In this document: positions 963-43,479 of the stretch, one piece after another
Layout of the letters: each line of letters opens with the position of its first letter
Position numbering within the stretch: the stretch's first letter is position 1
Assembly (NCBI GenBank): GCA_965649825.1
Contig: OZ287708.1
Location: forward strand, 153,201-217,200
Direction: 5' to 3'
DNA: 64,000 bases
Source of the DNA: Penicillus capitatus
Taxonomy: Eukaryota > Plantae > Chlorophyta
The notes under the pieces: model-generated
The model's database searches: none
What the model saw: the letters and a program-made list of their open reading frames with translations, nothing else
Told to the model about the DNA's origin: nothing
Translations under genes and position numbers: made by a program

Positions 963-2294
963 CTAAAATTGGACAGAAACCTACACAAAAGGAAAAGCAT
1001 AAGAGAGACAAAGAAGAGAAATTCACTTACGCAGTGCCCAGACATGAAGAACAGACGTTCTGGGATGGCCGTCGAAGAGATCCGGACACATTCGCCGGAC
1101 ATAAAGAACGGACGGCGGTGGAATCCGGGAGGCGTGACTGGGAAAATGAAGGGACGGGGAGGGATGGGAGGAGGGGCATTCAGACAAAAAAGAGATGTCC
1201 GTTGGGGGAAGGGAGGTGGTCGGGCAGGGAGAGAGAAAAAGAGGGGACGAGAGGGGATTAGAGGGGAAGGAGTTGCAGGTATACAGAATACCTGGGGGCG
1301 CGCAGGAAACAAAGGAGATTGGCTCTGCGGCCCGGACGGCGGGAAGAAGACGGGCTGTGGAATCGGAGCCGGAGACCACTCCATGATGGGCGGCTGGGCC
1401 GATTGGGCGGCGGCAGGCGGCGCCGGAACAGGCGACCACTCCATGTGTGGTGCCTGGGAAGCTGGCGGCTGTGGCGGCGCTCCAGGACCCGTGGACGGCG
1501 GCGGCACAGCAGACTGTGAGGCGGCAGGAGGTTGGACTGGCGGCGACTGAGGAGATGCGGATGGCGGCGGCGCTCCAAAGGCGGCGGCTGTCTGTGGCGG
1601 CGCTCCATGATGGGCGGCTGTCGGCGTGGCTCCTTGCCGCGAGGCTGTCTGCGGCGGCGCTCCAGAACCCGAGGACAGCGGCGGCACATGAGACTGTGAG
1701 GCGGCAGGAGGAGCGGATGGCGGCGGCGCTCCATGCTGGGTGGCTGGCGGTGGCGGCGGCGCATATGCTGGGACGCGCTGCGGAGGCGGCTGAGCAGCAG
1801 GCTGGCCCTCTTGGGCCAACCGCGCTTGCCTCTCCGCAGCCGAGAGGACCCTAGCTCTCCGCATGGGCCGCGGCTGTGGGGTTTGGACCCTATTGGGTCC
1901 AAACCGCACAGGAGGGGTCTGCGCATCGATGTGCGCTTGACCCCTCTGCGCAGTTGTTCGGGATTTTAAATCCCAATACAACTGCGCACGCGCGGCCTCA
2001 TCCAAGCCCTCGAAGGCCCTGGGCGGGTGACTTCCCAGGACCTCCCTCAACGTGACTTGGGCAAAGCTGGGAACACACAAGTGTTAGAGATCAGTCGAAG
2101 AAGAGTTTGTCGACGCGTCGCGCGCTGCAGAGCTTCTCGACTGCAGCCGGACGCATGCGTGTTGTGTTCATGGAGAGCGTCCAGCCGCAGGCGAAAGGCT
2201 CTGTAGCGCGCGACGAGTCGACGAATGGCCACGGGACTTACGGTCTGTCAGGATATCCGTAATCTTCTTCTGTAAACATGCGTGCGTCGGCCAT
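963..2294 (-). CDS. Novel proline-rich protein, copy U0 (368 aa, 3 exons: 2294-2242, 2066-1031, 980-963)
   Basis: Exon 1 MADARMFTEEDYGYPDRP, GTAAG donor, CCCAG acceptor. Exon 2 is the bulk of the 415-aa ORF. Intron 2 is GTAAG...TGTAG and the last exon is VSVQF*. Spliced length 1107 nt is in frame. Same structure in four paralogues. No family recognised. Confidence 0.85.
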
Positions 2295-2375
2295 ATCTTC
2301 TTCTTCTCTTGAGCGCGCGGAAAACAGGAAGGAGTTCGAACAACTCGACAGTGCGGAAGGGTCTGTGACAGGACC

Positions 2376-2381
2376 TTTATA
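2376..2381 (-). promoter_or_regulatory. TATA box of Pro-rich gene U0
   Basis: GCGGC(C)TATAAAGGTC about 80-100 nt upstream of the ATG, conserved in all five copies (also 13414-13419, 30297-30302, 40205-40210, 52969-52974). Confidence 0.7.
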
Positions 2382-3827
2382 GGCCGCCTCGGTTGCCGAG
2401 CGCGGCCTGCGGGTGGCGGCTGGGAACCGTGACCGTTTGGCGGCGCTGCATGCGCCGCCGGACAAACGATCGGCCGCCAGACGTCCAGAAACGCTGAGCA
2501 CTGTCATCGGGATGCGCGTCGCGAAAGGGAGAGCACTTCTGGAAGCTTTTCTAAGTTTTTTTACAGTCAAAGTTCTCTACAGTTTGTCGGCATGTTCCGC
2601 TCTGAGTGTAACGCGCATGCGTTCTCTGCGGCTGTTTCGACGCGATTCTCCGAACGGCCAACCGCTCGAGCCAGCTCCGCGTTGCCTGGGCATAGAAATG
2701 AGGCGGTCTCTCTCGTTCGCAGGATCGGCACGGACTCTGCGTCGAGAGGGCCTTCTGTTTCGGGCGTCTCCGTCGCAAACGCCGTCGACAGAGCGTTCTG
2801 CGCGGTGTAACGCGAGTCGGTTTGAGGAGATGTCGTTGGTCCTAACTCCCTCGAACATGGAAGGCGGAACCGACGACGCCTTCTGCGAGAAGCAAACGGC
2901 CACGGAGTCGTCGTTTCGGTTCGTGCTCGCACACAGCGTCGAGTGAGTGCTTTGGAGGACGCCGTTCGCTTCGACCAGCGAAGTCGGTCGCGTTGTGCGG
3001 ATGCTGTGCAGGACTGCTGTTCTGTCTGCGAATCCGTAGATCAGGCAGTCTCGAGAGCAACCTGTTTGATGGCGCTGTCGATCGCGGCCTGGGCCAGTTG
3101 TGATCCGATGCTATCACCTACCTTCTCTCAGGCGTATTCCACTGTGCAGAGCGCACCAAAGAGGCAGATTGTCATTGGAAAGGGATGACATGCTGCTGCG
3201 TCCTCGTTGGAATCGTCCATGCCGTTCCGTTCTAGTGTCCTGCGAGTTCTGATGCTGTGGTGGCTGTGACGGAGAACGTCCGTCTTCTGTTCGGAGACCA
3301 CTTGTCGAACATCTCTGTAATGAAAGACGAACAACTTCCGCCGAGTGTTCTGTGCGCGCGGGGCGTTCCTGGACGATGTCGTCAGTGCTGTCCGCGTGCT
3401 CTTGGACAGTAAGTGCACTGTGGAATGCATGAACGGCAGAGACTGTAGTCACGCCTGCTCTCGGCCCTGCCGTTCGGACCAGCGACTCGGCATTCCTCGC
3501 AGAACACCGAGATGCCTGTCGACGTCGGCGTGTTGGATCGATACCGAGGAATGCATTCGCATAGCAAAGCGTCCTCAAAACAACGGTGCGAGAATACACA
3601 CATTACGTGATGCGGCTCTGTAGACGGTAAAACGATTTCAGATGCGAGAGAGTTTGTTCGGGTGCTAAAAGAATGCGACTGTCCACTCCTCGATGTTTCG
3701 GCTGGCAAATCGAGACGAGACAGAAGGGGATGAATCCAATCGTGGATTCAGTTCCTACCCTTCACTGCATCTACGCGAGCATCCTGCGCAGAGAACTGAT
3801 GGATCTCGATATCTTTACGAGGCCAAA

Positions 3828-4224
3828 CCTCCTGCGCTGAGAGCACGACGATTGACCGGTGAATAGGAAGAGGAGCGAGAGATGCAAGGGCATCTGGAAA
3901 GAGCTAACGCCGACCTCGCTGAACGCAGGCCTCACTTCAACGAAAGAACAGCGAAAACGAGCGCGTGGCGAGAGAGCATGCTTCGGTCGTTCGAGAACTG
4001 AGAAGCAATGTGCGTCTCTGTGGCTCTCGTGTGGAGGGATCGCGAATGATGTGGCGTGCCTGCCTGCTTTCGTGATCAGATTCTACACGAGAAACGCAGA
4101 ACGCGAGAAATGGAGATGCGATTCGTAGCAGTCTTGCAAGAGAGTCTTTCCAAGGCTCGTGGTTTACTCGACCGAACGACGCAAGAGATCGACGTCGTTG
4201 GCAGCGTGGTGTGACGGACTGTCA
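3828..4224 (+). pseudogene. Captured, degenerate exons 3-4 of the coiled-coil gene whose intact copy is at 58741-59425
   Basis: Clear similarity to the reverse complement of 58731-59128 (ILHEKRRTREMEMRFVAV...). Starts inside an intron. Confidence 0.85.
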
Positions 4225-5684
4225 CCACTGTACCAGGTTTGCATCTGCCAATGATGACCAGCGTATGTATACTATGTGCTTGTCTGCCTGCTCTAGCCTA
4301 CTTCAATGATTCTCAGAGACAGGCCAGCAAAGATGCCGGACGTATTGCTGGATTGGAAGTCATGCGTATTATCAATGAACCGACGGCAGCTGCATTGGCC
4401 TATGGTGTCGATAAGAGAGAGGGATCGGTGGCCGTTTATGATTTGGGTGGTGGTACCTTCCTTATCTCCATCCTTGGGATCACAGGCGGCGTCTTCGAAG
4501 TGAAAGCCACAAACGGAGATACCTTTCTGGGTGGCGAGGATTTCGACAACACCCTGCTGACGTACATCATCGAGGAATTCAAAAAAGATCAGGGGATCGA
4601 TCTGACAAAGGATCGTTTAGCCGTTCGGAGACTCAGAGAGGCGGCAGAGAAGGCAAAGATTGAGCTGTCATCGACGACAACGACCGATATCGATCTTCCG
4701 TTCATTACAGCAGATGCATCCGGCGCCAAGCACCTGCATCAAACCTTGACGCGGGCAAAGTACGAATCTCTGGTCAGTTTACTGCTGGACCGAACAAAAC
4801 AGCCCTGTCAGAACTGCCTCAAAGATGCCGGAGTGTCCCGTGCCGATATCAACGACATCGTTCTGGTGGGCGGCATGACGCGTGTGCCAAAGGTGCATGA
4901 AATTGTCAAGGGCATTTTTGGCAAGGACCCATCTCGTGGGGTCAACCCGGACGAGGTGGTGGCCATGGGTGCCGCCATCCAAGGTGGTGCGCTGCGAGGT
5001 GACCGAGGCGACCTCTTACTGCTGGATGTCACTCCTCTGTCGACGGGAATCGAGACATTGGGAGGGGTGATGATCGTGATGATCCCCCGTAACACCACTG
5101 TGCCGACCAAGAAGACCCAGACCTTCTCTACTGCCGCTGACATGCAGACCCAAGTGGGGATCAAGGTCTTCCATGGCGAAAGACAGATGGTTACCGACAA
5201 CAAACTTCTCGGAGAGTTTGAGCTCGTCGGCATTCCTCCTGCATCCAGAGGTGTTCCACAGATTGATGTGACGTTTGGCATGGATGCGGACGGCATCATG
5301 CACGTCTCTGCTAAAGACAAAGCCACCAGCAAAGAACAGAAGATCACCATTCAGTCCTCTCGTGGTCTCTCCGAAGAGCAGATCCAAGATATGGTGCGCC
5401 AGAGTGAGCAGTTTGCAGAGGAAGACAAGAAGAGGAACGAGCTTGTCGAGGTTAAGAACAATGCCGACTCCCTCTGCTATACAGCCGAAAAGAACCTGGA
5501 AGAGAACAAAAGCAAACTTCCTCAGAATATCACCGACGATGTCAATACAGCTATGTCAGAGCTGAGAGCCGCCAAAGAGAAAGACGACCTCGAAAACATC
5601 GCGATGGCCATTAAGAAGCTGAATCAAGCGTTGATGAAGATCGGTGAGGCGATTTCTGGCTCATCAGACAAAGGCAGCAGCTAG
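4219..5684 (+). pseudogene. HSP70: 5'-truncated mitochondrial-type Hsp70 (DnaK-like) fragment, copy A
   Basis: TVP-intron(4237-4296)[10 protein letters not shown], [34 protein letters not shown]. Lacks the N-terminal part of the ATPase domain and the transit peptide. Substitutions at conserved sites (GGGTFL for [20 protein letters not shown]). TAG at 5682 where copy B reads GAG. The ORF-track ATG lies inside the intron. Confidence 0.85.
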
Positions 5685-5744
5685 GGAGAACCTGCAGCGG
5701 GAGGAGATCGAGAAAAGGCTCCAGGATAGAGAAAAGAGTGACAA

Positions 5745-6880
5745 AGGTGTCCCTCGGTGTCAAAATGCGAGATACAGAAATGCCATGTTTCTATGTCTAA
5801 CTCTCTCGCTAACTGCGGTTGCTTGGATCGCACCAGCCGCGACCTCCGCGCCACACCGCAAAGTTTGATCTCGCATCAATTCGCAACTGTCCGTCTGCCG
5901 ATTCCAGTTGTTCTGCAATGGCGTCGTCCCAGCGAACACAACAGGCGCGAGGCGCATCACGCGATTCGTAGCAATTGTGCAAGGGGATCCTGTGAAGGCT
6001 CATGCTCGACTCGACCGATCAAGAGATCGACCGAACCTTGCAGTGCCTATCGGAACTGCGCGCACAACCTGAACAGAATATCAAGGGCTGCCACGCTGGG
6101 TGGGTATGCACGCGACAGCTGTCTCGTCCATCTAGGTACCTGTGAATACGGTCGGATGCTTTGAATGTTGTGCTGCAAGCAGAACGTGTTTTCGTCGATC
6201 TTGGCTGTCAATACGTGGTCGAGTGCTCGGCATGTGAAGCTGAGGCCATTCTTACACGCAGGCGACAATCCCTGGGTTTCCCTCTCTGTCATGGACTCGA
6301 CGGCAATGACTTGATCGTTGCGGAGCCATCAAAGATCACATGCATATCGGCGGAGGCCGATGCGTGTCAGGAACGGGGAGCAGCCGTCTAAGCCACGTCG
6401 ACTGAACGAGGTTACGGATTGCAGACAGAGATCTCTTCTGTGGGATCTTCTTCTATCGTCAGAGATGAAGAGTGGCATGACAGATAATGGAATCGAATCG
6501 ATGCTGGATCGCTGGAGAGACTCGAGAAAGTGGCCGAAGCCAATCTCGACAAGGTACCCCCACAAAGAAACTCAGGTGCTTTGACAGAGGAGTTGGTGTC
6601 CCCGATAGCTAAAGCTGAAACCAAGAAGGGATCGAAGAAAGGATTCCTGTTGCAAAGACAACAACAAAACGCTCAGCCATCTGCAAAACCGAAGGTTGTT
6701 CACTGCTCTCTCCCCGTTTCTCTCGAATCAGGGACAGCGTCGGCGACGACGACTCGGCATAAGAATGAACAGTCCGTCTGTGTCTCGGATACGGTGCGAG
6801 AGAGGGACACCCGAACGGAGGAGAGCACAGAGGACACTGGCACCGAGAAGGTAGGCATCTCTGAATCGGCCAATGCATAA
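5745..6880 (+). pseudogene. Degenerate fragment of an unidentified host gene carried between cassette copies
   Basis: Broken reading frames (MFLCLTLSLTAVAW...; ALNVVLQAERVFVDLGCQYVVECSAC...; KAETKKGSKKGFLL...). Inverted paralogue at 35690-36830 has different stops and frameshifts. Confidence 0.45.
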
Positions 6881-7909
6881 CGATCTGTGATGCTCACCGC
6901 ACTGAGTCATCATGCCATCTATCCCCTTTGACTCCATAGCTGAGACGTGTGCCGGTTTCGCTTACCAGTTTTCATCTTGCTTCCCCATGCAACACCCATT
7001 ACTGCCCCTTGATATGCTTTGTGCTGTCTGTCAGATCGCCGAGAGTTGCTGACGCCGAGATTCGTATCTAGACTGAAATCAAGAACTGCATTCAGTTGTC
7101 GCGTGCATCGAGTTCCTATGCATCGATGTCTGGATGTCCGAGTGTTCCTTCAGCTGGCACAGTCTATGACAGCCAGCTCCTGCATGTTCTAAGACTGCGA
7201 AGTTGTTCTTGATGTTGTGTATTGTGAAGTACAATTGACATACCGTGTGCATTCTGACGCTGTGTTCCTGATTGTTTGTATAGAATCCGACACGCACATA
7301 TTGAACGTTGACGTCACACACAATACACTGAACACATTGTAAACGTCGACAACACTTTAATCAGAACTGAACTCGATCACAGTGGTGGTGTAATACGCTC
7401 TCATTCGCGAGCACACGTCGTCATCTCTGTAGGACAAGATAGGTTGGCGGCGCCGCCATGCTGCATTCTATTCTGCGGAGGCAATCTCCATCTGAGATAA
7501 ACGCGCTGACAGCTGAAGTTCCTGAAAAATCGTCTAGTGCATTCGACACAGGGGGATTACGTGCGTTCTCTGACAGCAGTTCATTCGTACGCCGTGTAAC
7601 GCTTTCCAAAACTAAGAAATCTGATGTCACACTTCATTGAATAAAGCAAAAAAAAGAAAGGTAGAAAGAAAAAAGAGAGAGATGACAGCAGGTCTTCCTC
7701 GAGACATGTTTGCTGAACGAGTCTCTACAACTGAAAACGGTGTTTTCATATTGTCTCTGTCTCTGTAGACAGCGACATTGTTTAGAAAGGATATTGTGTA
7801 AAGAATAGCTAACCTGTAGATCGCTTCCTTAAAGTGAGAGGATGTTGATCTGCGAGGCAGACTCAGATTTGGCCGCTTGCGCCAGCTTCAATCCAGAGGT
7901 GCCTCCACC

Positions 7910-9905
7910 GACAGCCAAACATCAGGGAAGCCGCCATGGCCGCCTTTACTGGCGGCCAGAGCGGTGGGTTGGCCTCCAGAACCGGCCAGAAAGGTGAATA
8001 GGCCGCCATTGCTGCCTCGAGTGACAGCGAGAGTGGTCGGTAGAGTGCCATGGCTGCCACTACTGGCAGCCAGAGCGTTGGGGTTGGCCTTCAGTGACGG
8101 CCAGATGTGAGTCGGCCGCCATTGCCGCCTCAACTGGCGGCCAGAGCCTCAGGTAGGGCGGCGCCCTGGCTGCCTCCACTGGCAGCCAGAGCGTTGGGCT
8201 GGTCGCCCATTGCTGCCTCGAGTGGCAGCGAGAGATCAGGTAGAGTGCCCTGGCTGCCTCCACGGGCAGCCAGAGCCGAAGGATGGCCTTCGTCGACGGC
8301 CAGATGATTGTCGGCCGCCATTGCCGCCTCCACTGGCGGCCAGAGCGTTGGGTCGGTTTCCAGCGACGGCCAGATGATTGTCGGCCGCCATTGCCGCCTC
8401 CACTGGCGGGCAGAGCATCAGGTAGGGTGCCCTGGCTGCCTCCACTGGCAGCCAGAGCGTTGGGCTGGTCGCCCATTGCTGCCTCGCGTGGCAGCGAGAG
8501 ATCAGGTAGGGTGCCCTGGCTGCCTTCACGGGCAGCCAGAGCGGAAGGATGGCCTCCGGTGACGGCCAGATGTGAGTCGGCCGCCATTGCCGCCTAAACT
8601 GGCGGCCAGAGCCTCAGGTAGGGCGGCGCCCTGGCTGCCTCCACTGGCAGCCAGAGCGTTGGGCTGGTCGCCCATTGCTGCCTCGAGTGGCAGCGAGAGA
8701 TCAGGTAGAGTGCCCTGGCTGCCTCCACGGGCAGCCAGAGCCGAAGGATGGCCTTCGTCGACGGCCAGATGATTGTCGGCCGCCATTGCCGCCTCCACTG
8801 GCGGCCAGAGCGTTGGGTCGGTTTCCAGCGACGGCCAGATGATTGTCGGCCGCCATTGCCGCCTCCACTGGCGGGCAGAGCATCAGGTAGGGTGCCCTGG
8901 CTGCCTCCACTGGCAGCCAGAGCGTGAGGGTTGGCCTCCAGCGACGGCCAAATGAGTGTCGGCCGCCATGGCCGCCTCCACTGGCGGCCAGAGCATCAGG
9001 TAGAGTGCCCTGGCTGCCTCCACTGGCAGCCAGAGCGTTGGGCTGGTCGCCCATTGCTGCCTCGAGTGGCAGCGAGAGATCAGGTAGAGTGCCCTGGCTG
9101 CCTCCACGGGCAGCCAGAGCCGAAGGATGGCCTTCGTCGACGGCCAGATGATTGTCGGCCGCCATTGCCGCCTCCACTGGCGGCCAGAGCGTTGGGTCGG
9201 TTTCCAGCGACGGCCAGATGATTGTCGGCCGCCATTGCCGCCTCCACTGGCGGGCAGAGCATCAGGTAGGGTGCCCTGGCTGCCTCCACTGGCAGCCAGA
9301 GCGTTGGGCTGGTCGCCCATTGCTGCCTCGCGTGGCAGCGAGAGATCAGGTAGGGTGCCCTGGCTGCCTTCACGGGCAGCCAGAGCGGAAGGATGGCCTC
9401 CGGTGACGGCCAGATGTGAGTCGGCCGCCATTGCCGCCTAAACTGGCGGCCAGAGCCTCAGGTAGGGCGGCGCCCTGGCTGCCTCCACTGGCAGCCAGAG
9501 CGTTGGGCTGGTCGCCCATTGCTGCCTCGAGTGGCAGCGAGAGATCAGGTAGAGTGCCCTGGCTGCCTCCACGGGCAGCCAGAGCCGAAGGATGGCCTTC
9601 GTCGACGGCCAGATGATTGTCAGCCGCCCATTGCCGCCTCCACTGGCGGCCAGAGCGTTGGTTAGGCCTCGAGTGACGGCCGGATGTGAGTCGGCCGCCT
9701 TGGCTGCCTCCAGTCGCGGCCAGAGCATCAGGTAAGATGCCCTGGCTGCCTCCACTAACGGCCAGAGCGTTTGGTCGGCCTCCAGTGACGGCCAGATGTC
9801 AGTCGGCCGCCTATGGCTGCCTCCACTGGCAGCCAGAGCGTGAGGGTTGGCCTCCAGCGACGGCCAAATGAGTGTCGGCCGCCATGGCCGCCTCCACTGG
9901 CGGCC
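7910..9905. repeat. Hairpin-monomer array type B with higher-order repeats
   Basis: ~36-42 bp monomers containing CTGGC(T/C)GCC-TCCACT-GGC(A/G)GCCAG. The marker CCAGATGTGAGTCGG recurs at 8101, 8566 and 9410. Confidence 0.95.
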
Positions 9906-10770
9906 AGACGTCAGAGTGACGCCTCCATGTGTCTCTTGCGGCGGCCAGACATCAGGTGGACGCCTGTCTTTGTCTCCGGCAGCGGCCAGACGTCAGGTGA
10001 ACTCCTTGACCGCCTCTTTCTCTGGCGGCGGAAAGACTTCAGAGTGACGCCTCTCACTCTCCGGCGACGGCCAGACGTCAGGTTTGACGCCTGTCTCTCT
10101 CTCTCCGGCGGCGGAAAGACGTCAGAGTGACGCCTGTCTCTCTCTTCGGCGGCGGCCAGACGTCAGGTTGGACGCCTGTATGTGTCTCCGGCGGCGGAAA
10201 GACGTCAGGTTGGACGCCTGTTTGTGTCTCCGGCGGCGGAAAGACGTCAGAGTGACGCCTCTCTCTCTCTTCGGCGGCGGCCAGACGTCAGGTTGGACGC
10301 CTGTTTGTGTCTCCGTCGGCGGAAAGACGTCAGAGTGACGCCTGTCTCCTTCTCTGGCGGCGGTGAGACGTCATGTGGACGCCTGTCTCCTTCTCTGGCG
10401 GCGGTGAGACGTCAGGTGGACGCCTCTTTGTGTCTCTGGCGGCTATGAGACGTCATGTGGACGCCTGTCTCCTTCTCTGGCGGCGGTGAGACGTCATGTG
10501 GACGCCTGTCTCCTTCTCTGGCGGCGATGAGACGTCATGTGGACGCCTTATTGTGTCTCTGGCGGCGGTGAGACGTCATGTGGACGCCTCTTTGTGTCTC
10601 TGGCGGCGGTGAGACGTCAGGTGGACGCCTTATTGTGTCTCTGGCGGCGGTGAGACGTCAGGTGGACGCCTTATTGTGTCTCTGGCGGCGGTGAGACGTC
10701 AGGTGGACGCTTTATTGTGTCTCTGGCGGCGGTGAGACGTCAGGTGGACGCCTCTTTGTGTCTCGGGCGG
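9905..10770. repeat. Array type C: variable 37-40 bp units, then ~10 copies of a 41-bp unit
   Basis: TCTCTGGCGGCGGTGAGACGTCA(G/T)GTGGACGCC repeated with 41-bp period from about 10350. Confidence 0.95.
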
Positions 10771-10849
10771 CGGCCGGACAATGGGTGGGGCCCAGACGAC
10801 GGTCTTCAGCAGCATCAAGAGCGGCAAACAGATTGTCTGTGACGGTCAC

Positions 10850-11860
10850 CAGCAGCTGCTAGACATCAGTTAGGGCGAAGACGACGGAGGTCCAATGACA
10901 GCAGCGCAGATAACAAATCATCCTTGGAGGTCTCCAGCATCCATTGACAGCAGCGCATCCAACAGATCATCCATGAGGGCCTCCAGCATCCAATAACAGC
11001 AGAAGCGACAAATAGAGCATGTGAAACGGCCTCCAGTAGCCGCCTTACGTCAAGTAGGCAATCGTCAAATGTTTCCAATTGCAGCAGAGCAAATAACAGA
11101 TCAACCCAGACTGCTTTCTACCTCCAATGACGGCATATAGATCACCATGAGGCCGTCCATCCTCCAATCACAGAAGGTAGTACATAGTCTACTCCAGCCT
11201 CCGACAGCAGCAGTACAGCAGGTAGATCATCCGAGTCGGCCTCCAGCATCCAACAACAGCAAGTAGAACATATGTGTCGGCCTTAGGGCCTCCATCAGCG
11301 GCCAGTCAGCAAATAGATCGTCCGGGATGTTTCTAGCCAACCTCCAGTCACTGGAACCAGCAAACTGATCAGCCATGACGGTTTCTAGCCTTTCAATCAC
11401 AGCAAGCAGAACATCAATGACAGCCTCCGTTCGCAGCAATACGGCAGGTAGATCATCCGAGTCGGCCTCCAGCATCCAACAACAGCAAGTAGAACATCCA
11501 TGACTGCCCTCAGCCTCCAATCACTGCAACCAGCAAACTGATCATCCATGACGGTTTCTAGCCTTTCAATCACAGCAAGCAGAACATCAATGACAGCCTC
11601 CGTTCGCAGCAATAAGCACTAAGACATCTGAGACAGTTTCCAGCCTCCAATGGCAGCAGGTAGACAATCCTAACGGCTTTGTCCATCCAGTCACAACAGA
11701 GCAGCGAGTAGATCATGTGAGACATCGTCCAGCATCTAATGGCAGCAATACTACAGCAGTAAGTCATCCATGAAGGCTTCAATCCAGCCACCATCCAGCC
11801 TCTAATCACAGTAGGGCAACAAATTGATAAACGGAGATACCTCCAGCCAGCCCCAGTCAC
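10850..11860. repeat. Decayed type-A repeat tract
   Basis: Recurrent GCCTCCA(G/A), CAGCAG and AGATCATCC motifs with local duplications (11340-11450 vs 11500-11610). Homologous to 31990-32950 and 54380-55090. Confidence 0.7.
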
Positions 11861-12095
11861 TGAAGATATTGCACCACAGCCTCCAAGTAAAACACCGAAT
11901 GCGCTTCGACAGCCTCCGGGCAAAAAAGCAGCTAACACAGAGCCAACCACAACAAAGCGGAGGTGGAATGGCAGAGAAACAGCAAAAGAAAGAAAACAGC
12001 CTTTTATTCTTTATTCTTTGATTCTTTATTTTTTTTATTTTTTTGTTTTTTTACCACCAAAGAAAACAGCTTGTAAAATTCAAAGAAATCTGGCC

Positions 12096-13331
12096 CTATT
12101 CATGCCAGTTCTGGATAGCAACCTACACAAGAAACAAAGCATAAGAGTGAACAAAATAGAGATGACGACTTACGCATTGCCCCGACATAAAAAACAGACG
12201 TTGCGGGATGACTGGGGGGCAGATGGTGATGCACTCTCCAGACATAAAAAACGGACGGGGAGGAAATCCTGGTCGTCTGACCGGAAAAATTGAGTTGCGG
12301 GGAGGGATGGGGGGAGGTTGCCGGAGGGAGAAACGCGATGTCCGCTGAGGGAAGGGAGTTGGACGAGCCGGGAGGGAGAAAAAACATGGACGAGAAGGAA
12401 TTATGGGACAGGGATCTGCAGGAATGCAGAACACTTGCGGACGAGGAGGAAATAGGGGAGATTGTGTCTGCTGAAGACAGGGCGGGGAAAGGGTGGGCTG
12501 TGGATAGGGGGAAGGAGACCACTCCATCTGGGGAGGCTGGCAGGCTGTCGGCTGGGCATACTGTGACATAGGAGGAGGTGTGGCCGGCTCGGAGGACGCT
12601 GGCGGCGCTGCGGACCACTCCATGTGGTGAGACTGGGCAGCGTGTGACGCTGGCGGCTGGTCAGGCTGCGAGTCTGGAGGAGGAGGGCCCGGTTGAGAGG
12701 CTGGCAACGTCTCGGCTGTCGACGTGGCCGGCTGGGCAGGCTGCGGCGCGGAACTCTGAGAGGCGGCATGCTGCGAAGCCAGCGGCGGCATGCCATGCTG
12801 CTCGGAGGGAGATTGCTGCTGGGCGGGCGGCGGCTGAGCAGCAGGCTGGCCCTCTTGGGCCAACCGCGCTTGCCTCTCCGCAGCTGAGAGGACCCTAGCC
12901 CGCCGACCAGACCGCGGCTGTGGGGTTTGGACCCTATTGGGTCCAAACCGCACAGGAGGGGTCTGCGCATCGATGTGCGCTTGACCCCTCTGCGCAGTTG
13001 TTCGGGCTTTTAGGTCCCAATACAACTGCGCACGCGCGGCCTCGTCCATGCCCTCGAAGGCCCTGGGCGGGTGGCTTCCCAGGACCTCCCTCAACGTGAC
13101 TTGGGCAAAACTAGGAACACACAGTGGTTAGAGATCAGTCGAAGAAGAGTTCGTCGAAACGTCGCGCGCTGCAGAGCTTTTCGACTGCAGCCGGACGCAT
13201 GCGTGTTCATGGAGAGTCCAGCCGCAGTCGAAAGGCTCTGCAGCGCGCGACGTTTCGACGAATGGCCAGTGGACTCACGGTCTGTCAGGATATCCATAGT
13301 CCTCTTCTGTGAACATGCGTGCGTCAGCCAT
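12096..13331 (-). CDS. Novel proline-rich protein, copy U1 (338 aa; exons 13331-13279, 13110-12174, 12122-12096)
   Basis: MADARMFTEEDYGYPDRP, GTGAG donor, CCTAG acceptor, last exon VAIQNWHE*. Spliced length 1017 nt is in frame. Confidence 0.85.
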
Positions 13332-13599
13332 TGTCTTCTTCTCTTGAGCACTGGAAAACAGGAAGGCGAGAGTTCAAACAACTCGACAGTGCGGAAGGGT
13401 CTGTGACAGGACCTTTATAGCCGCGTCGGTTGCCGAGCGCGGCCTGCGGGTGGCGGCTGTGAACCGTGACCGTTTGGCGGCGCTGCATGCGCCGCCGGAC
13501 AAACGATCGGCCGTCAGACCTCTAGAAGCGCAGAGTACTGTCGTCGGGATGCGCGTCGCGAAAGGGAGAGCACTTCTGAAAGCTTTTCTAAGTGTTTTA

Positions 13600-15395
13600 C
13601 AGAAGAAATTTCTTACAGTTTGTCCATGTGCTCCGCTCTGAGTGTAACGCGCATGCGTTCTCTGCGGCTGTTCCGACGCGATTCTGCGAACGGCCAACCG
13701 CTCGAGCCAGCTCCGCGTTGCCTGGGCAGAGGAACGCGGTGGGCGTTCTCTTTCGCAGGAGCGGAACGGACTCTGCGTCTGGACGACCGTCTGCTCCGGG
13801 CGTCTCCGTCGCAAACGCCGTCGACAGGGCGATCTGCGCGGTGTAACGCGAGTCGGTTCCAGGAGTTGGCGTGGGCCCTAACTCCCTCGAACATGGAAGG
13901 CGGAACCGACGACGCCTTCTGCGAGGGCCAGACGGCCACGGAGTCGTCGTTTTAGTTAATGCTCGCGCACAGCCTCGAGGGAGTGCCTTAGAGGACACCG
14001 TTCGCTCCGATCGGCGAAGTCGGTCGCGTTGTGTGGCTGCTGTGCAAGATTGCTGCTCTGTCTGCGAAGCCATAGATCGGGCAGTTTTGCAGACAACCTG
14101 TCTGATGGCGCTGTCGATCGCAGTCGAGGCCAGTCGCGATCCGATGCCATCGCCTTCTTTATTTCCGGCGTGTTCCACAGTGCAGAGCGCACCAAAGGGG
14201 TGAATTGCCACTAGAAAGCGATGGTATGCTGCTGCATCCTTATCGGAATCGACCATGACGTTCTTTTCTAGTGTCTGGCGAGTTCTGAGGCTATGGTGGC
14301 TGTGACGGAGAACGTCCGTCTTCTGTTCGGAGACCACATGTCGAACATCTCTGTAATGAAAGACGAACAACTGCCACCGAGTGTTCTGCGCGCGCGGGGC
14401 GTTCCTGGACGATGTCGTCAGTGCTGTCCGCGTGCTCTTGGACAGTAAGTGCACTGTGGAATGCATAAACGGCAGAGACTGTAGTCACACCTGCTCTTGG
14501 CCCTGCCGTTCGGACCAGCGACTCGGCATTACTCACCGAGCGCCAAGATGCGTGTCGACGTCGGCGCGTTGGATCGATATCGAGGAATGCATTCGCATAA
14601 CAAAGCGTCCTCAAAACAACGGTGCTAGAGAGAACGCACACTGAGTGACGCGCTCTGTAGACGGTAAAACGATTTCAGATGAGAGAGAGTTTGCTCGCGA
14701 CGAATGGGCGCGCCAACGGAGTGCGACTGTCCGCTCCTCGATTCTTTCGGCTGCCAAATCGTGGCGAGCTAGAAGGGGATGATGCCTGTCGTGGATTCAG
14801 TCCCTACCTTCCGACGCAGCTGCGCGAGCACGATGCTCAGAGAGCTGACGGACGTGGATTCGACGCGCGAATGCGCGTCAAGTACTCTGCCTTGCCACTG
14901 CCGTGCGTCGTTCTGGACTGTGGCAGCTGCCCGCCGTCAGTTTCATCGTCCTCCTCACTGCTGTCAGTGATCTCTCAACGCATCCATCCGCGCAGCGCGC
15001 TGTACGCCTGAGCATCTTGCGCTTTGCGTCTGTGCCTTTCCCTTTAATTAAATCCGAGTTGTGCCTGGGTACCTTTATTTGCGCTTGTTCTTCAGAAAGC
15101 AGTAGTCCAGTGCAAGCATCTTAATCTATCACTGTACAACAGAAGGCCGGCTAGGAAAGAAGACATCGCCGTTCGCCAAACAACAAGTTGTCTTCTCCTC
15201 GACACGACGACGGCAACAGACGACTGAGCTGCAGCGCATTCCACGCCTAGGACAGCTCGCTCGCAGACGTGACCAGGTTCCGTTTTATTCAGCAACCGAT
15301 ATATCACTGGGCGGAGCACGAGGGAAAGAGCGAACTCTGAACACGCGACGCGCGTCGGCAGCCGCCGCCACAGTCGTGATCCTGTCAGGAGATGC
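13600..15395 (-). pseudogene. Degenerate intron-containing gene X, head-to-head with NDUFA6
   Basis: MHLLTGSRLWRRLPTRVA... start, splice-like boundaries and protein-like segments (ITDSSEEDDETDGG; FGALCTVEHAGNKEGDGIGSRLASTAIDSA), with stops and frameshifts that differ among the paralogues at 28380-29640, 38780-39550, 51055-52340 and 3050-3800. Confidence 0.4.
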
Positions 15396-15460
15396 ATGCT
15401 CATCTTGCCGTAGAGCATTTTGAAGATTCGTCAGGCGTTGCATTACGGTCGCCGCCGAGA

Positions 15461-16089
15461 ATGGCCACTGGAAAAATCATCGCTCGTCTCAAGAACGCGA
15501 CGCCGATCGCCGTCGCTTCTCCGACCTCCGCCAGCGTCACGGACTTCTTCCGAGCGGTCGGCATCTCTCCGTGACGCGCCTACACCAACCACCCTGTGCT
15601 TCTTGCCTTCCAGTGCTGCCGCTGCGTTCCTTACGTTCTGCAGGCGTATCAGCTCGATGAAGTGGCAACGCCTCCAGTCGTGCGCAAGAAGATCGCGCAG
15701 AAAATCAGAGACCATGCTCACGTGAAGGACACACGAGTACATGTCCCTGCCCACGACTGCCACTGTCATGCTCGTCTGCATTAGGCCATCAGCAACCTTC
15801 TCGTGAAAGGCAACGAGGAGCTTTCGGTACACCGCACGCCTTGAGTTCTCACTCTTTACCTGACCGAACGTGTGACTGTAGCTGATCATGAATCACTTCA
15901 AGCAGAGACACCACCTGGTATGGGAAACGATTGGAGCGAGTGGATTGAATGGCTGTCGCGGTGCAGATGGCGGAGTATGTCGATACCATGGGAAAGCCAA
16001 AACTCGTTGTCAAGAAGTCGACGGACTCGCCTTTCCTGCAGCAGTTCTACCAATCGAACTACGCCCACCGCAAAGAGCTGCTGTCATGA
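15461..16089 (+). CDS. NDUFA6: Complex I subunit B14/NDUFA6 (LYR family), 139 aa, 5 exons (15461-15556, 15614-15736, 15785-15826, 15882-15917, 15967-16089)
   Basis: The spliced product contains DFFRACCRCVPYVLQAYQLDEV...AISNLLVKGNEEL...FKQRHHL...SPFLQQFYQSNY, matching plant/algal B14 hallmarks. All introns are GT-AG and phase 0. Confidence 0.85.
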
Positions 16090-16260
16090 GGCAGTTCCAC
16101 TGATCAATGGACACTGTATCTGTCTGTCGGTCGTTTAACGAGGGCGCGGCTGTAAGGAAACAGATTTCCTGGATGTCCCTTTGATATTACATCGAGATCC
16201 AGACTGTTTTTCGCGACAGAAGAGAAACGACGGGTACCATCTTCGATACGACTGGACCCA

Positions 16261-16698
16261 TCACGTCCTCCACAACATACGCACGCGTGCTGTGTAACGG
16301 GAGGCCTCTTTGTGAAAACGAGCGGCCGTCGCTGCGTCTTCCATCTGGACAAGGACGACAGAGATCTCGCATCCAAGAGCCGTGCCATCAAAAAGAGGCA
16401 GAGGTACTTTCAGAATGTAGGTTCTGTTGATGATCATCATTCTGGGACTGATGCCCTTGAGGATCTGGCATGTCTCGTCGAGGCACAGTTCCAGCAGCAC
16501 TGTGCCGTCTTCCGTACGAAACACCATGTGTCCCGCATCGTCCGACGCTGCGTAAAGGCAGATGTGTCCATCTGCTAGTGCCTGCGGCGGCCAGGGCCAC
16601 CGCACTTGGCACAACTGGACGGCAGCCGTCCACGAGAGACGATGGTCTCCGTCGCGAAAACCCTCTTCTATAGCCAGCAGACACAACACATTCGCCAT
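16261..16698 (-). CDS. Hypothetical protein divergent from PEX1 (probably spliced)
   Basis: 145-aa ORF, kept open (142 aa) in the duplicate at 49749-50177. No family recognised with confidence. Confidence 0.45.
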   Translation of the reverse strand: MANVLCLLAIEEGFRDGDHRLSWTAAVQLCQVRWPWPPQALADGHICLYAASDDAGHMVFRTEDGTVLLELCLDETCQILKGISPRMMIINRTYILKVPLPLFDGTALGCEISVVLVQMEDAATAARFHKEASRYTARVRMLWRT

Positions 16699-16982
16699 TT
16701 GCCGTGTTTTCGGAGCACTTCCTGCGACCTGTGCCTGGCGGAGATGTTATTTCTGGTGTGCCGCCTCTGATTCGAACGCTCTTCTCGTCTCTTTTCTCCC
16801 CGGAGTCGTCACGTGGACACGCGCGTTTCAGCGTTTGCGGCTTCGAAGGCGATGCGGTCTTCTCGATACCACCCAACATCGATCCAGCGATTCTGGCGTA
16901 ACCATCGTACGCATCTCTTCGACGACATCAGCTGTCGTACAGTGTCTCCGCGCGAGGACACCCTCATTCAACGTATCTTCCC

Positions 16983-19900
16983 ATGGAGTAAGTCGACGGA
17001 GCCAAGCGTCTGCAGAGATTTGTCCGTCTGTAGTCCTTTGCATGTGAGATGCGTGGACCGCCATGACTGTTGGGTTGCTCTCCCGGCCAGTGTTGCTCAT
17101 CAGATTGTATCGGCTCATGATTCCGAGCCCTTTCCTTTTGTTCTCAATCTCTGCAGCGTCGGACTCGTCAAACGCATAGGACTGGTGTGCTGGACAGGAG
17201 ATATCATCCATACGCACGATACTCTGGAGCTATCCACCAGTCTCGCTGCAGTGCTGGAATTGGAGGATGACCAAGCCATCACCATTCAAGCACGCCACCC
17301 CCTTGTCCAAAAACAGCACTTCTGAGGGTCATGATGTGATAGATGGTGCGCAAGGTCGCCGCGGCTGAAAAGGTGACGTTGCAATGTGTCACTCCATTTG
17401 ACTATGAATTGCTTCGCCTTGAGCATGAGTATTTTGAAGATTCTATTCTAACACAGGGAGCTGTTGTTGTGATTCAGCAACTGCTTCCTGTGTGGCTTCG
17501 ACAGCAGTCTACACCGATTCATTTAAAACCATTGAACATCGTCCCTGCCACTGTGCCCTTTGCTCTGATGACGGTGAACACAGAACTGGAGATCGAGATC
17601 TGTCCAGGAGTGATCGGAACCGTCGGACCACAGAAGGATGCACAGGGACACGACCGTCTGCCGTCCGAAATTATGGAAGCACCTTCGGACAGCGAATACC
17701 TGTCGCCTAATGGTTCATCGACGACGAATGGCTACCGCACACCTTTTGCACAATCGCAGGAAGGTGATGCGATCTCTCTCCTGAGTTGCTCGCGATGGGA
17801 TGATCTGTGCAGGAAGTCAGGGATCTTCGCAGAAGATGAAGAGGAAGCCATGTGAACTGCGACTGCAACGGAACACGAAGGAGGTGGATCTGTTGCTCAG
17901 AGCAACCGTCAAGCTGGATGTCCGCTGCGATCGGCATCTGGAGTTTATGGAACCGCTATGCGAAATGAGATCGTTACTGTACGACACTTGGTTTGCAGAG
18001 GGACTCCGTATCTCAACGCCCATCACTACAGTGCTTCTGTTGGAGTCCTCTGCAGCTGCGCAACTGGAATGCGGAGTCGGTGATTTTGTGATCGTTTCGA
18101 AGAAGAAAATGAGCAGCAGCAACTCTTCGATGTCTTCGGATATGACCGTGTTGAGAGTTTTCTTTCATGCTGCAGTTGCAAACGGACATTGTATGATGAG
18201 CGAAGAAGTCGCATCGCAGATCGGTGCATCGTATTGTTCCAGAATCTTTGTCACGAAGGCATTGCCCGGAAGGATGTTGAAATCGGAGCTCGTCCATATC
18301 ACTATTCAACCAGTCCATCCTCAACTGTCTCGACCCACTGAAGAGTTTTCCATCAAAGATTCGTCTACGGATGAGAGCGAAGACGAGCATACCGAAACAG
18401 GAGCTGCCTATCTGAAGAGTGTGCTTTCACCGTTGATGAATGTCGAGATCTTTACGAAGCCACAGGGCAAAACGGATGATCCATCGCACAGCTCCTATAT
18501 CAAGCAGACGGCACAAAAGGCAGTAGAGTACTGCTCGAAGATTGCCCCCGCTGCCATCGAGAGTGTGATGGAGCGGCTTCCAGTGTTCAAACGGATAGCC
18601 AGTGAGGAAGCCGAAGACACAAAGAGACTGGAGGTCTTTCTGAAAGCTCTGGTAGCGTGTTGGGTCGAAGCTCAACTTGAAGGATCGTGGAATGCCGATG
18701 CACTCTTCCGTCATCAAAGCAGTGACGATCGACATCTGTCTGATCACCATGGGCATCCTCAACACTTTGAGCACTTCTGCTTCTCGCCCAAATGCCTTTT
18801 GCATTTCACTGTCGAAGGAAAGGGAGAGAAGAGCACAAAGATGATGTTCAGTTTCAATCATGGGGAGAATGGGATCCTGAGTGAGGGTGCACTCATGTCG
18901 AAAATGGATGTTTGGTATGCGATGCGGCGAAATCACTGTTCGACCAGTATTGCTCCCGTGAGACGTTTGCCAATGGAGGCGCCCGAAACGATGCCGTCAA
19001 CCTTTTTAAATCATCGGATGCCTCCCTGGCTCGAGACACTGTTAGTTGAATGCACTCAGTTCCTGAAGCCTGCGCTCGATCTCAAGGATCGAGATGGCTC
19101 TGTCAGAGGAATGACGGTGGGTGTCATGCTCTCCGGGACCAAAGAGAGCGGCAAGACCAGTTTTGCCAGTGGTGTTTGTCAGAAGCTCGTGGAAGATTCC
19201 CGGTTTCTGGCCCACGTCACCTACATTCCCTGTCGTTCTTTATGGTCTGTCATGAAACAGAGCTTCAACAAATTCTCGAAGTGTGAAGCAAAGATCTTCC
19301 AGCGTGTCCAAGAGGCCCTCGTTGCATCTCCCAGTATTCTTGTGTTTGATGATCTGGACAGCTGGTGTGCAGCAGCAGAAGATGGCATGTCACTTTTCAC
19401 CATCAATTCTGTCAGAAAACGAGCAGTGATGATGATTCGAGACATTGTGGAACGCGTCCGTGCCACAGGTATGCCTCCTCCCAACGCACAGATTCAGGGT
19501 GTCTGCAGAGATGATCCTGTGCAGGAGCTCCAGTTGCCTTTCTCGCGACATGCACAAGTCTCAAGGATGTGGATGAGTCTCTCTGCCAGGCTGGATTCTT
19601 TGATTGCCATTTGCAGATGCCAGACCTCACATCTCCTATTCGCGCCGAAATGATGCAATATCTCTTTCATCAAAACAAAGTCGAGCTACATCCAAAGGCC
19701 CTTCAGGTGAGCTCTCGCCTACAGCTCGCTGTTCATTTGAGGAATGCACTCGTGTACTAGGGGATGTCTCAATGGGATGCTGGGTTTGAGTATGCCGATC
19801 TGGAACGTCTTGTCAGTCGGGCACTGCATTCGCATGTACGCAGCGCCGATCGAGATGACACCGTTATCACAGAGAAAGACATCGAAACGGCGTTGGATAC

Positions 19901-26640: not shown

Positions 26641-27686
26641 TGCTGGGCGATGGACGTAACAAAGAAGCTCGGACACGTAAACAATGAAAAAGGCCACGTA
26701 CGTAACAACAGGCGGACGCGCGCGATCGTTAATGACACGAATGGACGCTGAAGGGGGCGACAACTTCGATTAAATGGATCATGTGCTTACGATGTATGTG
26801 ACGGATGTGACAAAAACAGCGCATCATCGTCCTCGCCGTCAACAACAGAGATCCCACCCACCACTCACCCATTCTAGTAGTCCATTACCTGCGTGGTCAT
26901 GCGTGATGGAACCTCGTTCTATGACATTCTTCCAGAGGGTGTCCCTAATAGACCCTTTGGCGCAATGATTTTTCTGATTTGCATGGAGAAAGAGAACGCG
27001 ATTGATGGTATGCACGATGTCGTTGCTGGCTTTGAGGTTGACTGTGGTGACCTCGGCACAAGGGGGCACTGGTGGCAGCTTGGCAGCTGCAGTCCCTGAC
27101 AGTTGCGTTCGTAGAGCCTCGTGGCCATCCGACACCGAAAGGAGATTGATAGATGGTGACGGGAACGGAGTGGTCGGCAAAATCGAACGGGTCGGTTCAA
27201 ATCTAAACGCCACATAGAGCACGACCGGATATCTTTGTTTAGTGTTTCTAAGAGCTTCGGTCTCTCGTAGTTTAGATGGCCTATCTGCTTTCAATGACGT
27301 CTTTCGTCTTGTCACCTCAAAGGTCTGGGACAGATCGTGCAGTCATCCAAAGACTACAGCGATTCGATCAGATGGTGTTCTTCATTATCCACGCGATACC
27401 CTTCAGTACCTCTTCTAGAATTGGTCTAATCGGCGAACGATAGACACAACGTTGCCGTTTTCATCCACCATCGTGATCTCATCTCTGCTCAAAGAGACGT
27501 TTCAAACAAACCTGATGGATCCAGTCGTACCTAAGATGGCAAATGCTGTTTCTCTTCTGTCGCGAAAAACAATCGGGATCTCGATGTAATATCAAAGGGA
27601 CATCCAGGACATCTGTTTCCTTACAGCCGCGCCCTCGTTAAACAACCGACAGACAGATACAGTGTCCATTGTTCAGTGGAACTGCC

Positions 27687-28316
27687 TCATGACAGCAGAT
27701 CTTTGCGGTGGGCGTAGTTCGATTGGTAGAACTGCTGCAGGAAAGGCGAGTCCGTCGACTTCTTGACAACGAGTTTTGGCTTTCCCATGGTATCGACATA
27801 CTCCGCCATCTGCACCGCGACAGCCATTCAATCCACTCGCTCCAATCGTTTCCCATACCAGGTGGTGTCTCTGCTTGAAGTGATTCATGATCAGCTACAG
27901 TCACACGTTCGGTCAGGTAAAGAGCGATAACTCAACGCGTGCGGTGTACCGAAAGCTCCTCGTTGCCTTTCACGAGAAGGTTGCTGATGGCCTAATGCAG
28001 ACGAGCATGACAGTGGCAGTCGTGGGCAGGGACATGTACTCGTGTGTCCTTCACGTGAGCGTGGTCTCTGATTTTCTGGGCGATCTTCTTGCGCACGACT
28101 GGTGGCGTTGCCACTTCGTCGAGCTGATACGCCTGCAGAACGTAAGGAACGCAGCGGCAGCACTGGAAGGCAAGAAGCACAGGGTGGTTGGTGTCGGGCG
28201 CGTCACGGAGAGATGCCGACCGCTCGGAAGAAATCCGTGACGCTGGCGGAGGTCGGAGAAGCGACGGCGATCGGCGTCGCGTTCTTGAGACGAGCGATGA
28301 TTTTTCCAGTGGCCAT
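27687..28316 (-). CDS. NDUFA6: NDUFA6/B14 duplicate (copy 2)
   Basis: Same five exons and splice sites as 15461-16089; ends ...HRKDLLS*. Confidence 0.8.
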
Positions 28317-30387
28317 TCTCGGCGCCGACCGTAATGCAACGCCTGACGAATCTTCAAAATGCTCTACGGCAGGATGAGCATGCATCTCCTGACAGGATCA
28401 CGACTGTGGCGGCGGCTGCCGACGCGCGTCGCGCGTTCAGAGTTCGATCTTTCCCTCGTGCTCCGCCCAGTGATATATCGGTTGCTGAATAAAACGGCAC
28501 CTGGTCACGTCTGCGAGCGAGCTGTCCTAGGGGTGGAATGCGCTGCAGCTCAGTCGTCTTTCCTCACCGACCGTCCGTAGTACAGTGATAGATTAAGATG
28601 CTTGCACTGGACTACTGCTTTCTGAAGAACATGCACGGATGAAGGTACCCAGGCACAACTCGGATTAATCTGTAAGGCACAGACGCAAAGCGCAAGATGC
28701 TCAGGCGTACAGCGCGCTGCGCGGATGGATGCGTTGAGAGATCACTGACAGCAGTGAGGAGGACGATGAAACTGACGGCGGGCAGCTGCCACAGTCCAGA
28801 ACGACGCACGGCAGTGGCAAGGCAGAGTACTTGACGCGCATTCGCGCGTCGAATCCACGTCCGTCAGCTCTCTGAGCATCGTGCTCGCGCAGCTGCGTCG
28901 GAAGGGTAGGGACAGAATCCAGGACAGGCATCATCATCCCCTTCTAGCTCGCTCCGATTTGCCAGCCGAAAGAATCGAGGAGCGGACAGTCGCACTCCGT
29001 TGGCGCGCCCATTCGTCGCGAGCAAACTCTCTCTCTCATCCGAAATCGTTTACCGTCTGCAGAGCGCGTCACTCAGTGTGCGTTCTCTCTAGCACCGTTG
29101 TTTTGAGGACGCTTTGTTCTGCGAATGCATTCCTCGATATCGGTCCAACGCGCCGACGTCGACACGCATCTCGTCGCTCCGTGAGGGATGCCGAGTCGCT
29201 GGTCCGAACGGCAGGGCCAAGAGCAGGCGTGACTGCAGAGTCTGTCGTTCATGCGTTCCGCAGTGCATTTGCCGCACGAGAGAACATCGCCGGCGCTAAC
29301 GACATCGTCCTAGAACGCCCCGCGCGCGCAGAACACTCGACGGCAGTTATTCGTCTTTCACTACAGAGATCTTCGACAAGTGGTCTCCGAACAGAAGACG
29401 GACGTTCTCCGTCACAGCCACCACAGCATCAGTACTCGCAGGACACCAGAACGAAACGGCATGGACGATTCCAATGAGGATGCAGCAGAACTATCCCTTT
29501 CCAATGGCAATTCGCCACTTTGGTGCGCTCTGCACTGTGCAATACGCAGGAGAGAAGGTAGGCGATGGCATCGGATCGCGACTGGCATCTGCCGCGATCT
29601 ACAGTGCCATCGCACAAGTTGCTCTTGAAGCTGTCTGATCGATGGCTTCGCAGACAGAACAGCAGTCTTGCACAGCCGACGCAAAACGCGAACCGACTGC
29701 GTTGATCGGAGCGAACGGCGCTTCCAAAACACTCCCTCGGCGCTGTGCGCGAGCCTTAACTGAAACAACGACTCCGTGGCCGTCTGGTCCTCGCAGAAGG
29801 CGTCGTCGGTTCCGCCTTCCTTGTTCGAGGGAGTTAGGACGCACGCCAACTCCACGAACCGATTCGCGTTACACCGCGCAGAACGCTCTCTCGACGGCGT
29901 TTGCGACGGAAACGCCCGAAACAGACGGCCCTTTCGACGCACAGTCCGTTCCGATCCTGCGAACGAGAGAGACCGCCTCATTCCTCTGCCCAGGCAACGC
30001 GGAGCCGAGCCGAGCGGTTTGCCGTTCGGAGAATCGCGTCGGAACCACTGCAGAGAACGCATGCGCGTTACACTCTGAGAGGAGCTTGCGCACAGACTGT
30101 AAGGAATCTCTTCTGTAAAACACTTAGAAAAGCTTCCAGAAGTGCTCTCCATTTCGCGACGCGCATCCCGACGACAGTACTCTGCGCTTCTAGAGGTCTG
30201 GCGGCCGATCGTTTGTCCGGCGGCGCATGCAGCGCCGCCAAACGGTCACGGTTCCCAGCCGCCACCCGCAGGCCGCGCTCGGCAACCGAGGCGGCCTATA
30301 AAGGTCGCGTCGCAGACCCTTCCGCACTGTCGAGTTGTTTAAACTCCCGCCTTCCTGTTTTCCAGAGCTCGAGCGACGAAGAAGACA

Positions 30388-32950: not shown

Positions 32951-33049
32951 CTGATGCCTAGCAGCTGCTGGTGACCGTCACAGGCAATCTGTTTGCCGTT
33001 TTTGTTGCTGCTGAAGACCGTCGTCTGGGCCCCACCCATTGTCTGGCCG

Positions 33050-36830: not shown

Positions 36831-36835
36831 TTTCT

Positions 36836-38757
<1,922 letters not shown>

Positions 38758-42420: not shown

Positions 42421-42429
42421 GGTGATTGA

Positions 42430-43460: not shown

Positions 43461-43479
43461 CCGTCAGCGATCTCCTTCG

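Follow-up and report, generated by a model that had tools for sequence, protein, structure and literature searches.

Does a hairpin whose two arms change together from one gene copy to the next betray a functional RNA, or can such an arrangement be produced by the mutational process itself? The question is raised by the window considered here (the whole stretch of DNA that was analysed, 64,000 nucleotides), which contains five copies, U1 to U5, of a cassette gene whose first intron is largely occupied by a long and nearly perfect stem-loop. Paired changes in the arms of a stem are usually taken as the strongest sign of a functional RNA, and an earlier note had described the structure as a covarying hairpin of the pre-miRNA or mirtron kind. 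Comparison of this intron across the gene family reveals its anatomy, two states of the stem, a conserved 5′ half and a one-sided rewriting of the arms. The explanation we favour, with a probability of about 0.5, is that the long perfect stem would be a recurrent mutational product, in which one arm is copied from the other on top of an older conserved intronic element.

The cassette gene and its introns

By comparative evidence intron 1 is real. Compared among family copies it has a GT[AG]AGT donor, a CTRAC branch site and a YAG acceptor; exon 1 (53 nt, MAD..EDDYGYP..P) spliced to exon 2 keeps the frame open in each of the 18 initially recovered copies, and the differences between copies in these two exons include synonymous ones. 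Prokaryote-style ORF calls (P0001-P0006 and P0132-P0138, on L001-L021) begin at in-frame ATGs inside intron 1, for instance GCCATGCTTCGAC, so that database entries carry spurious hairpin-translated N-termini and miss exon 1. A TATA-like GGCGGCCTATAAAGGTC box lies about 85-110 nt upstream of the ATG in every ingroup copy with examined upstream sequence (the window copies and L001-L010), and the position of the TATAAAGG box of U1 (Table 1) would place the hairpin within the first ~200 nt of the transcript. At the other end of U1, the last exon after intron 2 is very short (CVSVQF and stop), and a small conserved hairpin, CTGTCC-AATTTTA-GGACAG, is found beyond it in the region down to about position 940.

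Table 1. Positions of the cassette features in the window, numbered from its first nucleotide
Feature	Position	Strand	Remarks
Intron 2, copy U1	981-1030	-	50 nt; conserved in all copies; size yardstick
Intron 1, copy U1	2067-2241	-	175 nt; GTAAGT...CAG; phase 2
Long hairpin, copy U1	2109-2222	-	42 pairs; 22-nt loop
Core element, copy U1	2141-2190	-	Inner stem CTGCGGCTGGACGC/GCGTCCGGCTGCAG and apex; retained in nearly all family members
Exon 1, copy U1	2242-2294	-	53 nt; MADARMFTEEDYGYPDRP
Conserved TATAAAGG box	2374-2383	-	~85 nt upstream of the U1 ATG
HSP70 fragment, mitochondrial type	4239-5684	+	Open; starts at about residue 174 of the full-length protein
Intron 1, copy U2	13111-13278	-	168 nt; hairpin 13150-13262, 50 pairs, MFE -96 kcal/mol (sense strand)
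Intron 1, copy U3	30441-30610	+	170 nt; hairpin 30457-30571
HSP70 fragment, mitochondrial type	36842-38289	-	Split over three frames
Intron 1, copy U4	40345-40519	+	175 nt; hairpin 40364-40477
Intron 1, copy U5	53124-53286	+	163 nt; hairpin 53146-53249, arm sequence of subgroup A-II

When the stem ends were recomputed, they coincided in all five window copies with the positions given in the earlier note, and its range of 163-175 nt for the length of intron 1 was borne out (Table 1). Folded alone, the hairpins have minimum free energies (MFE) of -80.5 to -96.1 kcal/mol, against -40 to -48 kcal/mol for dinucleotide shuffles (z from -8.3 to -15.2; none of 200 shuffles matched the native fold), with 42-50 pairs and 1-4 internal mismatches. 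The core motif occurs ten times in the 64-kb window, corresponding to two arms in each of five copies, and nowhere else in it; hairpin and intron of U4 are the exact reverse complement of those of U1. Sense and antisense strands fold with equal stability, as expected of a DNA palindrome, and this is counted in favour of arm copying.

The stem begins 16-22 nt past the 5′ splice site and ends 37-42 nt ahead of the 3′ splice site. If the hairpin (~110 nt) is looped out, 55-61 nt of intron 1 remain, a size to be set beside the 44-52 nt of intron 2 in all family copies and the 60 nt of a relic intron ahead of an HSP70 fragment. Intron 1 had been described as three times the usual size, which holds against these two introns, although they are the entire yardstick, since a regular-expression census (GTRAGY...CTRAY...YAG) gave no usable set, strong donor consensus sites being rarer than in shuffles.

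Mirtrons are animal introns that are themselves the pre-miRNA, the hairpin ending at the splice sites. The window hairpin resembles them in being an intronic structure released by splicing of the host gene, but its ends are not the splice sites, from which they are inset by the distances given above, and its stem is about twice as long; the designation "mirtron-like" is thus abandoned.

Genomic surroundings of the cassettes

A large inverted segmental duplication (1000-17300 and 27500-41600, centre at about 21.3-21.9 kb) makes up much of the window. Its outer pair, U1/U4, is 96-98% identical and its inner pair, U2/U3, about 90%, which suggests, at the level of sequence, unequal later conversion of the duplication arms. 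The hairpins were considered as the pivot of this duplication and rejected, because the centre of symmetry lies away from them. Dense minisatellite arrays with periods of 41, 42, 95, 113 and 199-266 nt (1-396, 7932-10773, 33047-34582, 42092-45743 and 55197-57193) fill the space between the cassette genes and are common to cassettes in both orientations. The two HSP70 fragments inside the cassette (Table 1) look like pseudogene pieces; a partial HSP70 ORF that is 92% identical (P0012, 503 aa) is found on another contig, of 2.2 Mb.

Two states of the stem in one gene family

The cassette protein has no Pfam domain, and it matches only 26 clusters among 1.84 billion representatives, all of them unnamed, which constitute the whole family. 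Contigs from two ENA assemblies (ERZ25074695, ERZ26696514) carry the relatives, and at least 11 family copies lie on the window's own contig (572 kb). Nineteen distinct copies of intron 1 were recovered and all nineteen contain homologous sequence; an empty site was seen in none of them.

The long stem is present in nine distinct copies (MFE -77 to -103 kcal/mol, z from -8 to -15), namely four distinct window copies, U4 being a duplicate of U1, two on L006, and one each on L007, L010 and L003 (2226-2405). Six other ingroup copies, with an intron 1 of 179-185 nt, have arms that are only about 70% complementary (z from +1.5 to -2.8), and their frames are open across the conserved region of exons 1 and 2. 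The five copies of the outgroup subfamily have an intron 1 of 239-263 nt; L008 and L009 form an imperfect stem (z -2.3 and -3.4), L021a and L021b an apex stem at most, and L020, which was not scored, resembles L009. Hence at least ten of the 19 copies keep intron 1 without the long stem, and the statement that every copy bears the hairpin applies to the five window copies and fails for the gene family. The second subfamily (L008, L009, L020 and L021) has an additional intron after ...GGGEV. A precomputed RESC6/RESC8 Pfam flag on L021, which would have pointed towards a kinetoplastid, was not reproduced by direct scanning, which gave a weak FAST_1 match only.

A hairpin recurring at one place invites the idea of a mobile element, a MITE, foldback element or introner that landed in the intron or created it. 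The stem is indeed similar to a long terminal-inverted-repeat palindrome, an almost perfect inverted repeat of about 110 nt as in MITE-derived hairpins, and its removal would leave an intron of ordinary size. MITEs, however, are dispersed. Free copies flanked by target-site duplications, which the earlier note had named as the alternative, are missing from about 290 kb of the source genome and a relative, where the sequence is confined to intron 1 of the family, once per gene and at the same site in every member, and the empty site expected of an insertion does not appear in the 19 copies. There is no target-site duplication, the best flanking direct repeats being 3-5 nt and inconsistent, and subgroups differ in where the palindrome starts (intron position 10, 17, 20 or 23); variable ends and the lack of such a duplication are both counted for arm copying. 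A metagenome scan with the 20-nt hairpin core retrieved nine matches, all of them bare stretches of 20-22 nt in GC-rich contigs with neither flanking similarity nor a family gene, and these are chance matches. A transposon origin is therefore very unlikely. An assembly artefact was also discarded, because many paralogs on long contigs carry the hairpin, with sequences that differ among them.

A conserved 5′ half and a replaced 3′ arm

The two halves of intron 1 have had different histories. Over 99 columns comprising the 5′ flank, the 5′ arm and the apex, which are conserved in all copies, ingroup and outgroup are 68% identical, whereas the figures are 52% at the four-fold sites of the adjoining exons, 44% in the 3′ arm and 43% in the 3′ flank. 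Since its identity exceeds that of the four-fold sites, the 5′ half of intron 1 behaves as a conserved non-coding element. Nearly all of the 16 copies compared have the inner 13-bp stem and its apex, with 82.5% of the cells paired; this pairing consists mostly of conserved sequence, and the covariation in it is within the shuffle range (the observed values were attained by 52 and 93 of 500 shuffles).

The 3′ arms behave otherwise. Those of the degenerate copies resemble one another and the outgroup (47-69% identity), while the 3′ arms of the long-stem copies are only 31-41% identical to degenerate or outgroup ones, and each reproduces the 5′ arm of the same copy in reverse complement. The coding tree does not separate long from degenerate states but interleaves them, so that at least two or three separate events of re-perfecting are implied. 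Parsimony with L008 and L009 as outgroups favours an ancestor without a perfect repeat, although the tree is confounded by gene conversion between paralogs, and polarity drawn from it is weakened accordingly.

Such conversion is one reading of the divergence values. Among long-stem copies the hairpin has diverged by 4.6%, the intron flanks by 7.2%, exon 2 by 12% and the promoter by 15%; in the degenerate copies the order is reversed, exon 2 being 97-98% identical and the intron about 80%. This mosaic indicates, as far as sequence comparison goes, either gene conversion between paralogs or diversifying selection on the protein. The low divergence of the hairpin relative to exon 2 and the promoter in long-stem copies speaks against arm copying and, in relation to exon 2, for a selected small-RNA gene. 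Exon 2 of U2 (12837-13109) and that of U3 (30612-30875) differ at 31 of 270 nucleotides and 14 of about 90 residues, and their introns at 7 of 170 nucleotides.

Paired changes: compensation or copying?

That the arms change together between copies, as the earlier note had claimed, was confirmed against two kinds of control. In the nine distinct long-stem copies 94% of the cells are paired and both sides have changed in 8 of 43 pairs, in 17 cells. In 500 shuffles neither this number of cells nor the covariation score was ever equalled, whereas eight pairs with a change on both sides were attained in 51; with the partner arm slid, 24-41% of the cells were paired. The note had left the choice between selection for pairing and arm-to-arm conversion, and for the long outer stem the latter is favoured by the interleaved states, the variable palindrome ends and the two cases that follow.

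In the copy at L003:2226-2405, a single 22-column tract of the 3′ arm contains 8 of the 22 lineage-specific changes; these eight, plus an inserted base, turn 26 nt of the 3′ arm into the perfect complement of a 5′ arm that does not differ from those of its relatives. The chance that all eight substitutions would be complementary is about 1e-4; the clustering itself is marginal (P ~0.05), which weakens the case for copying. The second case is the comparison of U3 with its nearest relative, L006:19267-19397: two neighbouring stem bases differ (CG>TT), in mirror image of an AA in the 5′ arm, and the relative carries the unmirrored hybrid. In both cases the changed tract is complementary and the source tract has stayed unchanged, which is the signature of a template switch. 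The copies of subgroup A-II differ from one another only by one-sided, uncompensated mismatches, the pattern of decay after rewriting. The covariation of the outer stem is hence more likely, for the most part, a mutational footprint than a pair-by-pair record of selection.

Two further points stand on the side of selection. One-sidedness would also be expected if selection fixed the 5′ arm and left only the 3′ arm free to compensate, and the 5′ half is indeed constrained. Moreover, the four non-Watson-Crick pairs common to many copies, the long-lived ones, are all G:U on the sense strand, whereas each of the ten A:C mismatches is confined to one copy (Fisher P = 0.023). A process acting purely on DNA is not expected to distinguish G:U from A:C, so that the difference hints at selection on the sense RNA and counts against arm copying.

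Does the hairpin yield a small RNA?

The wobble pairs, the length and near perfection of the stem and the conservation of the 5′ arm above four-fold sites would all suit a selected small-RNA gene, in which the intron would contain the precursor of a miRNA or hairpin-siRNA, a Dicer-like enzyme would cut it, the 5′ arm would supply the guide and the pairing would be under selection. An intronic stem of 45-55 bp would be an obvious Dicer substrate if the alga has the machinery. That small RNAs arise from it is plausible, since Chlamydomonas derives miRNAs from intronic hairpins: of its high-confidence miRNAs, 61% originate in the introns or UTRs of mRNA precursors and are made by DCL3 (PMC4817775). 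The likeness to the intron-derived precursors of Chlamydomonas reinhardtii (e.g. cre-miR1157; Valli et al. 2016, PMC4817775) extends to the host, probably a green alga too, and to the placement of a stem-loop that lies inside a spliceosomal intron of a protein-coding gene without being bounded by the splice sites. The named proteins closest to the HSP70 fragment of the cassette are from green algae (Bryopsis 77%, Ostreobium 76%, Chlorophyceae ~72%), and a CBM53 starch-binding domain above the Pfam threshold is encoded in a neighbouring locus.

The same comparison marks the differences. The window hairpin, known here from DNA alone, has no sequence similarity to any Rfam miRNA family, unlike the Chlamydomonas precursors. 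At gathering thresholds Rfam gave no match in the 64-kb window; in E-value mode one copy gave three generic miRNA-hairpin matches of 18-24 bits, against gathering thresholds of 56-90, of which two belong to one family and the best, mir-4888 (23.5 bits against 90), was found on both strands. Most miRNAs of Chlamydomonas are, for their part, young and unconserved, with small effects and weak function (PMC5511227). A scan for tRNAs found none, and a snoRNA was rejected, as no C/D or H/ACA box arrangement was apparent by eye and a perfect stem of 45 bp is unlike one.

The distribution of the stem also counts against a selected precursor. Four mismatches or fewer opposite a 21-nt segment, the limit for intronic miRNA or hairpin-siRNA precursors of the algal or plant type, are found in the five window copies and exceeded in the six degenerate paralogs, and the copies that lack the long stem nevertheless keep the intron and, in six ingroup cases, the ORF as well. 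With up to three mismatches allowed, the 21-mers of the hairpin have no match elsewhere in about 230 kb, a small fraction of the genome, in which the family's own mRNA is included. The idea that the cassette might be a selfish unit of toxin/antidote type thus receives no support, as the hairpin has no counterpart in the mRNA of its own unit. We consider a small-RNA gene under selection unlikely.

A more particular use of small RNAs is permitted by the fact that arm sequences are common within subgroups and absent elsewhere. The hairpins might serve this rapidly duplicating orphan family as a sensor of copy number or kin: each intron 1 would yield nuclear small RNAs complementary only to the intron-1 arms of family pre-mRNAs, the dosage of the family would thereby be sensed and reduced during transcription, and the trigger would be renewed by template switching. 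We hold this to be very unlikely.

Does the hairpin act on its own gene?

Action in cis is the other use to be weighed: the core stem-loop and the 5′ half of the intron might be the binding site of a factor, perhaps the product of the gene itself, or might act as a first-intron enhancer. Conservation of the 5′ half and the near-universal, well-paired core stem agree with this, as does the remainder of 55-61 nt after looping out, close to the size of intron 2. Yeast introns are known to contain zipper stems and autoregulatory structures (PMC12350175), and the window hairpin is comparable to the zipper stems (RPS17B; Rangan et al. 2025, PMC12350175) in that its position fits and the effective distance within the intron would be shortened. 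It is, however, far longer and more perfect than these stems, which have 6 bp or more, and its linker totals about 37 nt, below the minimum of 42 nt modelled for yeast (PMC12350175).

Dispensability is a further difference from the zipper stems: paralogs with introns of 179-263 nt have intact frames and no long stem, so that the long stem is not needed. In the core, covariation no greater than in shuffles also counts against a cis role, and the N-domain of the protein, in a weak AlphaFold model (pLDDT 70, pTM 0.38), consists of two helices with no recognisable RNA-binding fold. We consider a cis role unlikely. Since the origin of a hairpin and the use made of it are separate questions, both the small-RNA and the cis readings are partly compatible with arm copying.

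A model of stem renewal by arm copying

Taking together (i) the L003 tract and the U3 dinucleotide, (ii) the palindrome ends, which vary and lack a target-site duplication, (iii) the interleaving of stem states and (iv) the equal folding of both strands, we propose that the stem is renewed by arm copying. In the model, an old family-specific element, made up of the conserved 5′ half and a small stem-loop (~13 bp) whose apex is rich in CATG, would reside in intron 1, the degenerate arm representing the ancestral state. In some paralogs, all five window copies included, the stem would have been extended to 45-55 nearly perfect base pairs by rewriting the 3′ arm into the reverse complement of the 5′ arm in the same copy, probably through template switching in replication or through repair within a DNA hairpin. 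The hairpin would then slowly gather one-sided mismatches until it is rewritten again. It would be tolerated and leave with the intron, presumably harmless for splicing, because looping it out leaves 55-61 nt, near the 50 and 60 nt of the two verified introns.

Template switching is known to create or repair a perfect stem in a single event, often in introns (PMC8794818, PMC10710096). The hairpins of this origin, among them the de novo intronic miRNA hairpins of primates (Monttinen & Loytynoja 2022, PMC8794818; Monttinen et al. 2023, PMC10710096), share several properties with those of the window: a multi-base change makes one arm the exact reverse complement of nearby sequence, the perfect stems are lineage-specific, intronic and co-transcribed with the host gene, and changes that appear compensatory arise without stepwise selection. 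The present case differs from them (PMC8794818, PMC10710096) in that the event is recurrent at one homologous site of a multi-copy family and is built on an older conserved stem-loop, with stems of 45-55 bp against about 35 bp.

Implications

The hairpin of intron 1 belongs to already known kinds, and its value is that of a cautionary example. At one homologous intron the family offers a natural series that runs from a small conserved stem-loop through a degenerate long palindrome to a fresh, perfect hairpin of 45-55 bp. If the arm-copying model is right, this would be a compact case of template switching manufacturing both "covariation" and Dicer-ready intronic hairpins, outside the primate data in which the process was described, and it would call for caution in scans that score paralogs for covariation. 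Should small RNAs be made from these hairpins, the family would moreover provide a dated example of the birth of a hairpin in a poorly sampled algal lineage.
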